A DNA stretch of 33,515 bases, from positions 1-33,515 of the forward strand of contig NIVC01004847.1 of the NCBI GenBank assembly GCA_002269645.1, written 5' to 3'. The translations under genes and the position numbers were made by a program. Of this stretch, positions 19,901 to 22,900 are shown in pieces; the first letter of the stretch is position 1; each line of letters begins with the position of its first letter. The notes beneath the pieces are model-generated. The model ran no database searches and was not told the origin of the DNA. It was given only the letters and a program-made list of their open reading frames with translations. This DNA is from Macrostomum lignano (Eukaryota).

Positions 19901-22900
19901 TTATTGAGTAGTTTATTGAGTAGTTTACTAAGTAGTTTATTGAGTAGTTTATTGAGTAGTTTGTTGAGTAGTTCATTGAGTAGTTTATTGAGTAGTTTGT
20001 TGAGTAGTTTATTGAGTAGTTTATTGAGTAGTTTACTAAGTAGTTTATTGAGTAGTTTATTGAGCAGTTTGTTGAGTAGTTTATTGAGTAGTTTATTGAG
20101 TAGTTTACTAAGTAGTTTATTGAGTAGTTTATTGAGTAGTTTGTTGAGTAGTTCATTGAGTAGTTTATTGAGTAGTTTGTTGAGTAGTTCATTGAGTAGT
20201 TTATTGAGTAGTTTGTTGAGTAGTTTATTGAGTAGTTTATTGAGTAGTTCGTTGAGCAGTATATTGAGTAGTTTATTGAGTTTATTGAGTAGTTTATTGA
20301 GTTTATTGAGTAGTTCATTGAGTAGTTTGTTGAGTAGTTTGTTGAGCAGTTTATTGAGCAGTTTATTAAGTAGTTTATTGAGCAGTTTATTGAGAAGTTT
20401 ATTGAGTAGCTTATTGAGTAGTTTGTTGAGCAATTTATTGAGCAGTTTATAAAGTAGTTTGTTGAGCAGTTTATTGAGAATTTTACTGAGTAGTTTATTG
20501 AGTAGTTTAATGAGCAGTTTACTGAGTTGTTTATTGAGTAGTAAATAACGTAGTGTCAAAAACGATTACCCCTGGCAATGTCGCAGGCCGCAAGTTCCAG
20601 TTCTGGACCCGGATCTGCATCAGGACCGGCTTGGATGAGATGCTGCCGGCTGTCAGGCAGTACGGCTTGTCCTTCATCATGGTGCTGCTGTCGCTCACCA
20701 CTGTGTACTTTTTCGATCGCACAACTCGACTGTTCATCAACCTGGCCCTGCTGCACATCCTCATCTTCAACTGGTCGCCGGCTGGTCACTACGTGAACGC
20801 CATGGACATCTGGTACGCCATGTGCACCTTCGTGATCTGCTGCTGCCTGATGGCCGCACTGGCCAAGAAGTCCAACGAGCCCGGGGACGAGGAGCTGCTT
20901 GATGAGGTTGCGGCTGCTGAGGATCCGCTGCAGCTGCCGAGATCGGCCAAGCACAGCTACAATGGGGTGAGTTGTCAGGAGGGCTTAGTGTCAGATAGGG
21001 TTAGTGTCAGATAGGGTTAGTGTCAGATAGGGTTAGTGTCAGATAGGGTTAGTGTCAGATAAGGGTTAGTGTCAGATAGGGTTAGTGTCAGATAAGGGTT
21101 AGTGTCAGATAGGGTTAGTGTCAGATAGGGTTAGTGTCAGATAGGGTTAGTGTCAGATAGGGTTAGTGTCAGATGTGGTTGGTGTCAGTTGTGGTTGGTG
21201 TCAGATGTGGTTAGTTTCAGATGTGGTTGGTGTCTTTTTTTTTTTAGAGGCAGGGGGGTTGTGTGCACCCTGGCGCACTTTAAGCGACATAGGCACACAA
21301 CCGGCGAGAGGCATTACTGCCCATTCCGCCGACTCCCCTGAGCAGGCATACAAGCGCGCGGATACGTACGCAGGCACACACTCACACAGGAGTGTACAGC
21401 GGCCCTAACTTTATAATATCGTTAGGCATGTACACTTCACTGCGCCTTGGGGGTTGGCTCTCAAGGCCGTTAATTGCACGAGCAGAGCCAAGCCGAGATT
21501 CCAATTCAGCCCCAAATTAATGTGACTGCACTTGGAATCAAGCCTGGGTCGCTGGCACACCAGAGCAGCTGCGCTACCGCTGGGCTACGGCCCCCTATGG
21601 TTGGTGTCAGATAGGGTTAGTGTCAGATGTGGTTGGTGTCAGATAGGGTTAGTGTCAGATGTGGTTGGTGTCAGTTGTGGTTGGTGTCAGATGTGGTTGG
21701 TGTCAGATGTGGTTGGTGTCAGATAGGGTTAGTTTCAGATAGGGTTAGTGTCAGATGTGGTTCGTGTCAGATGTGGTTGGTGTCAGATAGGGTTAGTGTC
21801 AGATGTGGTTGGTGTCAGTTGTGGTTGGTGTCAGATGTGGTTGGTGTCAGATGTGGTTAGTGTCAGATAGGGTTAGTTTCAGATAGGGTTAGTGTCAGAT
21901 GTGGTTCGTGTCAGATGTGGTTGGTGTCAGATAGGGTTAGTGTCAGATGTGGTTGGTGTCAGTTGTGGTTGGTGTCAGATGTGGTTGGTGTCAGATGTGG
22001 TTAGTGTCGGATGTGGTTGGTGTCAGATGTGGTTGGTGTCAGATGTGGTTGGTGTCAGATGTGGTTGGTGTCAGATAGGGTTAGTGTCGGATGTGGTTGG
22101 TGTCAGATGTGGTTGGTGTCAGATGTGGTTGGTGTCAGATGTGGTTAGTGTCGGATGTGGTTGGTGTCAGATGTGGTTGGTGTCAGATGTGGTTGGTGTC
22201 AGATAGGGTTAGTTTCAGATAGGGTTAGTTTCAGATAGGGTTAGTTTCAGATAGGGTTAGTGTCAGATGTAGTTGGTGTCAGTTGTGGTTGGTGTCAGAT
22301 GTGGTTAGTGTCGGATGTGGTTGGTGTCAGATAGGGTTAGTTTCAGATAGGGTTAGTTTCAGATAGGGTTAGTGTCAGATGTGGTTGGTGTCAGATGTGG
22401 TTGGTGTCAGATGTGGTTGGTGTCAGATGTGGTTGGTGTCAGATGTGGTTGGTGTCAGATGTGGTTGGTGTCAGATGTGGTTGGTGTCAGATGTGGTTGG
22501 TGTCAGATGTGGTTGGTGTCAGATGTAGTTGGTGTCAGATGTGGTTGGTGTCAGATGTGGTTGGTGTCAGATGTGGTTGGTGTCAGATGTGGTTGGTGTC
22601 AGACTTGGTTGGTGTCAGATGTGGTTGGTGTCAGGCGGGACAATGTGTCAGATTAGACTTTCTCAAAGCAGAACCTCTCAATGACAATGCTTCCACAGAC
22701 GATGATTTACCAGAAGGACCCGAGGTCCTCAAAGTGCACGGCCATCACGGAGTCCTCGGACAACCTGGACCTGTTCGGCCTGGCGGAGCCGCTCCCGCCG
22801 CAGCCGCACATGCCGCAGGCGTCAACAGCGAGGCTGACGGCAGCAGACCGGCAGCAGCTGCAGCTGCAGCAGCAGCAACAGCGACACCGGCAGCGGCGGC

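Follow-up and report, generated by a model that had tools for sequence, protein, structure and literature searches.

A Divergent Cys-Loop Receptor Subunit Family of Macrostomum lignano with a Probable Ancestral Shortening of the Pore Module

Introduction

The prime numbering of the pore helix M2, the pore-ring model of ion selectivity and the gating models of the Cys-loop receptor superfamily all take the length of M2 as constant. The gene described here, from the free-living flatworm Macrostomum lignano, encodes a receptor-type protein in which this length is changed. It is found on the forward strand of contig NIVC01004847.1 (GenBank assembly GCA_002269645.1), which was analyzed from position 1 to 33,515; this whole stretch of 33,515 nucleotides (nt) is referred to as the window. 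The protein is an undescribed variant of a well-known protein family, real and conserved, in one flatworm species. It is probable that its short pore module, reaching from membrane helix M1 to M3, belongs to a real, selectively maintained gene of a divergent, anion-side Cys-loop subunit family whose ancestor lost about eight residues. The family has so far been seen only in M. lignano.

In the survey by Jaiteh et al. (2016), which covered 561 family members from all kingdoms, the numbering of M2 was free of ambiguity as far as 25' (PMC4795631). Insertions and deletions are thus not normally seen there, and a loss inside this range would be unusual for the superfamily. The norm for M2 length in the superfamily was taken from that survey (PMC4795631); a protein search with a GABA-A delta fragment gave vertebrate delta orthologues only, and these served as one canonical profile for comparison. 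The literature searched gave no relevant account of a pentameric channel whose M2 is shortened, nor of this family in Macrostomum.

The Short Pore Module

The features of the module are as follows:

20661-20813, + strand: short-module region, Y242-W292
20661-20711, + strand: 17-residue M1 segment, Y242-F258
20667-20669, + strand: Leu244 codon, opposite the conserved proline of M1
20712-20780, + strand: M1-M2 loop and M2 up to the M2-M3 proline, F259-P281, 23 residues
20754-20756, + strand: codon of His273, CAC
20799-20813, + strand: start of M3, AMDIW

The module is read in frame 1 of 20577-20969. The stretch that begins after M1 and ends with the M2-M3 proline is 23 residues long, compared to 31 in glycine receptor (GlyR) alpha2, GABA-A delta and GluCl. 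Measured from the M1 Tyr to the A-x-D-I-W motif of M3, the distance is 51 residues, while it is 52 in a paralogue, P0008, and 59 in each of the same three receptors, a net deficit between M1 and M3 of eight residues here and seven in the paralogue. HMMER introduces a gap of 7-9 residues after LLHIL, MAFFT places a single 8-residue gap before NWSP, and hhalign divides the gap, with four residues in the M1-M2 loop and four in the middle of M2. None of the four alignment methods tried gave an alignment with a normal M2 length. P281 falls in register with the canonical proline of the M2-M3 loop, 88% conserved in the superfamily, with both hhalign and MAFFT.

M1 itself aligns without gaps in HMMER, hhalign and MAFFT, with Leu244 opposite a proline that is 77% conserved in the superfamily, and is predicted by AlphaFold as one unbroken helix (aa 232-258). 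The loop before M2 reads FDRTTR and includes neither the PAR motif (no Pro or Ala precedes the Arg) nor GEK. D260, four positions ahead of R264, is the one acidic residue of the loop, and Glu is absent. Between R264 and W279 there is not a single Ser or Thr. Since M1, M2 and M3 all reside in one exon of 380 nt (20587-20966), mis-splicing is ruled out as the source of the short M2.

Much of this had been claimed in a preliminary description made from the sequence letters: a shortening by about eight residues, a gapless M1 with Leu in place of Pro, the missing PAR and GEK motifs, the lost Ser/Thr pore rings and the placement of M1 to M3 in a single exon were all borne out. The reference length given there for GlyR, 31 residues against 23, agrees with the tool-derived sequences of GlyR alpha2, GABA-A delta and GluCl. 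An alignment restoring M2 to its usual length, named there as evidence that would speak against the shortening, was produced by no aligner.

Comparison with Known Receptors

The closest described systems are the GABA-A, GlyR and GluCl receptors, which give the best sequence and profile matches. The Pfam ligand-binding domain, Neur_chan_LBD (PF02931, cut-off 26 bits), scores 29.7 in P0008, 24.0 in the receptor protein, where the match spans aa 60-189, and 20.6 in a third paralogue, P0005. When the family profile was compared to the PDB, GABA-A delta was matched from the ligand-binding domain through M3 (E=1.7e-6), followed by glycine receptors (2.4e-4 to 0.03, with GlyR alpha2 at 2.4e-4) and GluCl (0.05); the best matches were all GABA-A, GlyR or GluCl. 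The membrane domains of GlyR and GluCl align to the profile at E=2.4e-4 to 0.05. Acetylcholine-binding proteins were also found (0.03 to 0.4), matching by the extracellular domain only, and no membrane domain of a cationic receptor was among the PDB sequence matches. With hhalign, the GABA-A delta profile aligned over 251 columns at E=1e-4. An AlphaFold model made with GABA-A delta sequences in the alignment reached a predicted local distance difference test (pLDDT) score of 53, with about 70-77 in M1-M3, and its top Foldseek matches were all pentameric channels, with TM-scores of 0.25-0.37. The AlphaFold models are of monomers only. The matches are weak but agree with one another, and we conclude from them that the receptor protein is homologous to the superfamily and belongs on the anion-channel side, outside every described subfamily.

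The receptor protein shares with GABA-A, GlyR and GluCl a Cys-loop with 13 residues between the cysteines and an invariant proline, a ligand-binding domain of the usual length (second Cys to M1 Tyr, 73 residues), the A-x-D-I-W opening of M3, and a proline and an aromatic pair of M4 in register. The sequence FDRT after M1 is also found in GluCl alpha. Unlike these receptors, it has eight fewer residues between M1 and M3, no Pro-Ala-Arg, no Thr or Ser rings in M2, Leu for the M1 proline, Gly at the site of the Cys-loop Asp, no match to PF02932 and a tail with two cysteines, and overall identity is about 20%.

In GLIC, a proton-gated pentameric channel of bacteria, M2 likewise bears a conserved His halfway along the helix; this residue, H235, is structurally important and influences proton sensitivity (PMC5760087), and is a possible analogue of His273. 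However, GLIC has an M2 of normal length, has the M1 proline and lacks the Cys-loop cysteines, and the similarity is at the level of the fold only. The orphan invertebrate clades (Pro-loop receptors) of Jaiteh et al. (2016) are similarly lineage-restricted and very divergent, with variant loop tips, and include a nematode clade with a YPFE motif shifted by one residue (PMC4795631). In those clades M2 is gap-free to 25', whereas the family described here keeps the cysteines and shortens M2.

A conserved family that does without two turns of M2, the proline kink of M1 and the canonical Cys-loop Asp would represent a natural experiment on which parts of the scaffold are dispensable. An inventory of flatworm channels was filtered on Pfam PF02932 and the F/YPxD motif (PMC6881066). 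The M. lignano family has neither, and such flatworm inventories can therefore miss whole clades. The practical weight of the finding is limited, as the family is known from one free-living species.

Paralogues and Conservation of the Short M2

When 1.84 billion representative proteins were searched exhaustively, the only relatives were six M. lignano clusters, and a profile search of a 5.8-billion-sequence collection likewise returned M. lignano proteins only; every protein relative is named in UniRef as coming from this free-living flatworm. The exhaustive search was needed, as a word-indexed homologue search with an early, Cys-less model of the gene gave no match. The family has at least three paralogues, among them the UniProt entries A0A1I8FW04 and A0A1I8HIK5.

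P0008 is about 50% identical to the receptor protein and has the same 23 residues from M1 to the proline; INLALLHIL, the His and the M1 Leu are all common to the two. Identity to P0008 is 58% in the extracellular domain, 54% in pre-M1 and M1, 78% in the M1-M2 loop and M2, 47% in M3, 36% in the cytoplasmic loop and 31% in M4, with 51% overall. The best-conserved 23-residue window of the whole protein, at 83%, is aa 257-279. The public fragments P0002 and P0007 have an M2 identical to that of the receptor gene and differ from each other by one residue elsewhere (E to Q).

Because a sister gene with 50% identity is seven residues short at the same place, the shortening is inherited and not an error. 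The preliminary description had asked whether paralogues share the deletion, as P0008 does, and had named two ways in which the finding might fail. An assembly deletion does not hold up, with the same segment carried by P0002, P0007 and P0008, and the position of M2 as the most conserved part of the protein argues strongly against a pseudogene.

The public models of this locus or of its near-identical copies (P0001, P0002, P0004, P0006 and P0007) are all broken, at sites that include 18458-18470 and 18938-19226. P0001 ends at a retained intron with a donor reading TGG/TGA, P0004 and P0007 skip the Cys-loop exon, and P0006 is frameshifted. P0002, a fragment covering M1-M3, carries the automatic name “Protein wntless”. 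Of the third paralogue, P0005, only 180 residues are known; they form the C-terminal end of a public model of 883 aa that bears the name “ZP domain-containing protein” and is probably a fusion of two neighboring genes. The model stops within the extracellular domain, and the membrane part is absent from it.

Elements That Couple Binding to Gating

The Asp at the tip of the Cys-loop is normally salt-bridged to the Arg that precedes M1. In the receptor protein, P162 of the Cys-loop is in register with the proline of GABA-A delta, and the cysteines with each other, in HMMER, hhalign and MAFFT. The position of the Asp in the F/Y-P-x-D motif, 93% conserved, is taken by Gly164, and an Asp follows one residue later. 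The tips of the three paralogues read H-P-F-G-D, Y-P-L-S-D and H-P-L-G-D, that is, H or Y, then P-x, then G or S, then D. The Cys-loop proline is 100% conserved in the superfamily (PMC4795631).

The last strand is closed by R229 (in ICIR). Three extra residues, also present in the paralogues, lie between this strand and the M1 Tyr, which sets R229 that much farther from the Tyr than the pre-M1 Arg is in GABA-A delta. Neither hhalign nor MAFFT pairs R229 with the canonical pre-M1 Arg, which is 94% conserved. With the M1 proline lost, the Cys-loop Asp displaced and the outer part of M2 shortened, it appears from the alignments that every element coupling binding to the gate has been altered.

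Two further features were observed. A motif of the cytoplasmic loop, SKCT-I-E-SD-LDLF (22730-22790, aa ~354-374), is common to the paralogues, and M4 is followed by an extracellular tail of 17-20 residues with two conserved cysteines in the pattern C-x(5)-L-x(2)-E-C (23030-23076, aa 454-469). Neither the motif nor the long two-Cys tail is a feature of canonical receptors.

The Position of His273

The pore number of His273 varies with the aligner: 7' in HMMER and MAFFT and 15' in hhalign, and it becomes 9' only if R264 is taken as 0'. R264 immediately precedes the hydrophobic run and comes out at 0', -2' or 2', depending on the aligner. On a helical wheel, the positions that vary between paralogues (266, 276, 277 and 280) point to 176 degrees, and His273 lies at 180 degrees, while the invariant face of M2 is made up of N268, L271, L272, L275, N278 and W279; this evidence is weak, as it rests on two sequences. 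The conserved mid-M2 His of GLIC, H235, lies inside the helix bundle of the subunit and is hydrogen-bonded to the backbone of M3 (PMC5760087). His273, too, probably acts within the helix bundle, as a structural element or a sensor, and probably forms no ring in the pore. The pore-lining “His ring” of the preliminary description is thus not established, given the disagreement among aligners, the location of His273 on the paralogue-variable face and the precedent of GLIC H235.

Proposed Mechanism and Rival Explanations

In the proposed mechanism, the ancestor of the family would have lost about eight residues between M1 and M3. Two to four of these would have come from the M1-M2 loop, removing the PAR selectivity motif, and four to six from the outer half of M2. 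The M1 proline would also have been lost, and the Asp at the tip of the Cys-loop would have moved by one position, so that all of the changes would fall in parts that normally couple ligand binding to the opening of the pore. The protein would still form pentamers. Its M2 would be a strongly hydrophobic helix of 18 residues (predicted at aa 261-278), about two turns short, that lines the pore with Asn, Leu and Trp, or else with Phe, Ala and His, with a loop of about nine residues leading on to M3. The protein is most likely an atypical channel with altered gating and permeation, and less likely a mere membrane anchor. The strong conservation of M2 suggests that a specific function is still carried out by the membrane domain. 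Should the pore be conducting, permeation by anions is favored, based on the net positive charge of the M1-M2 loop and the ancestry in the anion branch.

Several points weigh against this reading. An 18-residue helix with bulky hydrophobic side chains also matches a non-conducting pore. The similarity to the superfamily is weak, with the receptor protein just under the Pfam cut-off for the ligand-binding domain, and neither the receptor protein nor the paralogues match the Pfam membrane domain, Neur_chan_memb (PF02932). Conservation was measured on two full-length sequences only. The M. lignano proteins on public record were predicted computationally, in several cases with wrong splicing, and no copy derived from a transcript was found among the relatives. 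An AlphaFold model from a three-sequence alignment was uninformative (pLDDT 36), the delta sequences added to the second alignment bias the fold search, and the structure models have low to moderate confidence (pLDDT 36 and 53).

Non-conduction is a serious rival, though on the unlikely side: the protein may be a non-conducting or purely modulatory subunit that keeps the scaffold with the pore permanently closed or absent and serves as a ligand decoy, as an accessory in heteromers with the other paralogues, or for signaling via the long cytoplasmic loop. The register of HMMER and MAFFT, which would make Asn, Leu, Leu and Trp face the pore without Ser/Thr rings, fits this explanation, as do the alteration of all the elements linking binding to gating (M1 Pro, Cys-loop Asp, outer M2) and the paralogue-conserved SKCT-I-E-SD-LDLF motif in the cytoplasmic loop. 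However, M2 is conserved above the ligand-binding domain, which is not expected for a mere anchor, and functional channels, too, normally have hydrophobic rings at 9' and 13', which make up the gate in the closed state. A further proposal, in which five copies of His273 encircle the pore at mid-height (9') and make conduction sensitive to pH or metals, is harder to sustain, and we consider it improbable. Taking R264 as 0' would place His273 at 9', with Phe at 2', Ala at 6', Phe at 13' and Ser at 16'; a basic residue is found at 0' in 79% of family members (PMC4795631), and the His is invariant between the paralogues. Yet this register was chosen by no aligner, His273 sits in the middle of the face that holds all the paralogue-variable positions, and the conserved mid-M2 His of GLIC is buried in the helix bundle.

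The gene might also be a decaying pseudogene or a redundant duplicate in a recently polyploid genome, with the short M2 as tolerated damage. The restriction of the family to one species with many near-identical gene copies, the lack of transcript evidence among the records found and the fragmentary public models are what such a gene would present, but we regard this as very unlikely: all seven exons have canonical splice sites and together keep the frame of 469 codons intact, and the divergence is structured by domain (identity rises from 36% in the cytoplasmic loop to 58% in the ligand-binding domain and 78% in M2). The segment length and core are also shared with a paralogue of about 50% identity, so that the change predates a long divergence through which M2 has stayed about 80% identical. 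Least tenable of all is an artifact of assembly or annotation, either an in-frame deletion of 24 bases or a missed micro-exon. The locus is surrounded by minisatellites that are hard to assemble, and frameshifts do occur in its public models (P0006), but M1 to M3 are contiguous in one open exon with no intron to hide a missing piece, and P0002, P0007 and P0008 have the same length, which largely refutes this explanation.

To return to the reading as a conserved, divergent receptor family, a stronger form of it would hold that the lineage shortened its pore helix by two turns, remodeled the coupling interface and placed M2 under the strongest constraint in the protein, to give a working pore or membrane-domain function with an architecture unseen in characterized members. 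We put this forward tentatively and think it rather unlikely. If true, it might mean, for example, a short hydrophobic pore gated by pH or metals via His273, or the use of the scaffold for something other than a channel.

Gene Model

The gene spans 16845-23079 on the + strand and consists of seven exons that form one open frame of 469 codons. All exon boundaries are GT-AG with consistent phases, and the reading frame is intact. The exons and M4 are as follows:

16845-16924, + strand: exon 1, ATG and signal peptide; phase-2 donor CAA/gtgagt
18029-18170, + strand: exon 2, start of the ligand-binding domain (N-terminal helix, first strand), with a stretch highly conserved in all three paralogues
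18246-18463, + strand: exon 3, core of the ligand-binding domain; strong donor TTTG/gtgagt
18938-19020, + strand: exon 4, Cys-loop C154-C168 (18957-19001), 13 residues between the cysteines
19101-19226, + strand: exon 5, strands beta8 and beta9 and the loop-C region
20587-20966, + strand: exon 6, 380 nt, bounded by AG and GT; beta10, pre-M1, M1, short M2, M3 and start of the cytoplasmic loop
22699-23079, + strand: exon 7, remaining cytoplasmic loop, M4, extracellular tail and stop codon
22948-23028, + strand: M4, aa 427-453, in register with M4 of GABA-A delta (MAFFT)

The protein thus opens with a signal peptide, followed by an extracellular domain of about 200 residues. It has four hydrophobic helices, with about 115 residues of cytoplasmic loop between M3 and M4, and a Cys-bearing tail after M4. 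Hydropathy and the AlphaFold secondary structure both give a signal peptide and four membrane helices with a long M3-M4 loop, and AlphaFold places the first three helices at aa 232-258 (M1), 261-278 (M2) and 288-311 (M3). The part of the cytoplasmic loop in exon 7 includes the SKCT-I-E-SD-LDLF motif and a Gln/Arg-rich stretch.

Parts of the model are also found in public M. lignano fragments. The N-terminus from exon 1 is identical to that of P0001, the junction of exons 5 and 6 (FEE/ANPENQ) is present in P0006, and that of exons 6 and 7 (HSYNG/TMIYQ) in P0002 and P0007. Exon 4 is wedged between two minisatellite arrays and directly follows one of them. In the first gene model, exon 3 was joined to 19070 via a weak donor, which resulted in a “Cys-less” protein. 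This model was dropped after alignment with the paralogue P0003/P0008, in which the segment HRATVRCDGPALQYPLSDTLCSIVFEEA pointed to the missing Cys-loop exon at 18938-19020, with consistent phases and strong splice sites. The public model P0004 repeats the exon skipping of the rejected model.

Surroundings of the Gene

The window is laid out as GC-rich exons separated by introns packed with minisatellites. Almost all introns of the receptor gene are filled by these arrays, as is the stretch that immediately follows its stop codon (16938-17169, 17797-18023, 18474-18917, 19688-20542, 20980-21234, 21598-22634 and 23145-24125), and their units are, in the same order, CTGT x58, CTAT x57, a 17-mer x26, a 12-mer x72, 16-mers x16 and x65, and a 14-mer x70.

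Inverted repeats around an exon favor exon skipping or back-splicing. A dispersed element of about 300 nt is present in two copies of opposite orientation (19279-19557 and 21254-21566) in the introns that flank the M1-M3 exon, with arms of 150 and 95 nt that are 91-92% complementary. If this exon of 380 nt were skipped, the reading frame would be shifted.

Upstream of the receptor gene are a mariner/Tc1-type transposase open reading frame with HTH_48 and DDE_3 domains (4827-5897, + strand) and remnants of a retrotransposon pol gene (6813-8853, - strand), with an RNase H domain and an integrase-like stretch, that are split by an array of about 500 nt reading (CRLHR)n / (AAQVP)n. About 4.3 kb upstream of the receptor gene is an intronless glycosyltransferase reading frame of 402 codons (11350-12558, + strand) with an N-terminal membrane anchor and a sugar-binding DXD region (Pfam Gly_transf_sug, E=1.7e-9). 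On the other side of the receptor gene lies a tropomodulin gene (27579-32235, - strand), whose N-terminal exon matches Pfam Tropomodulin at E=1e-37 and whose other exons are situated between minisatellite-rich introns.

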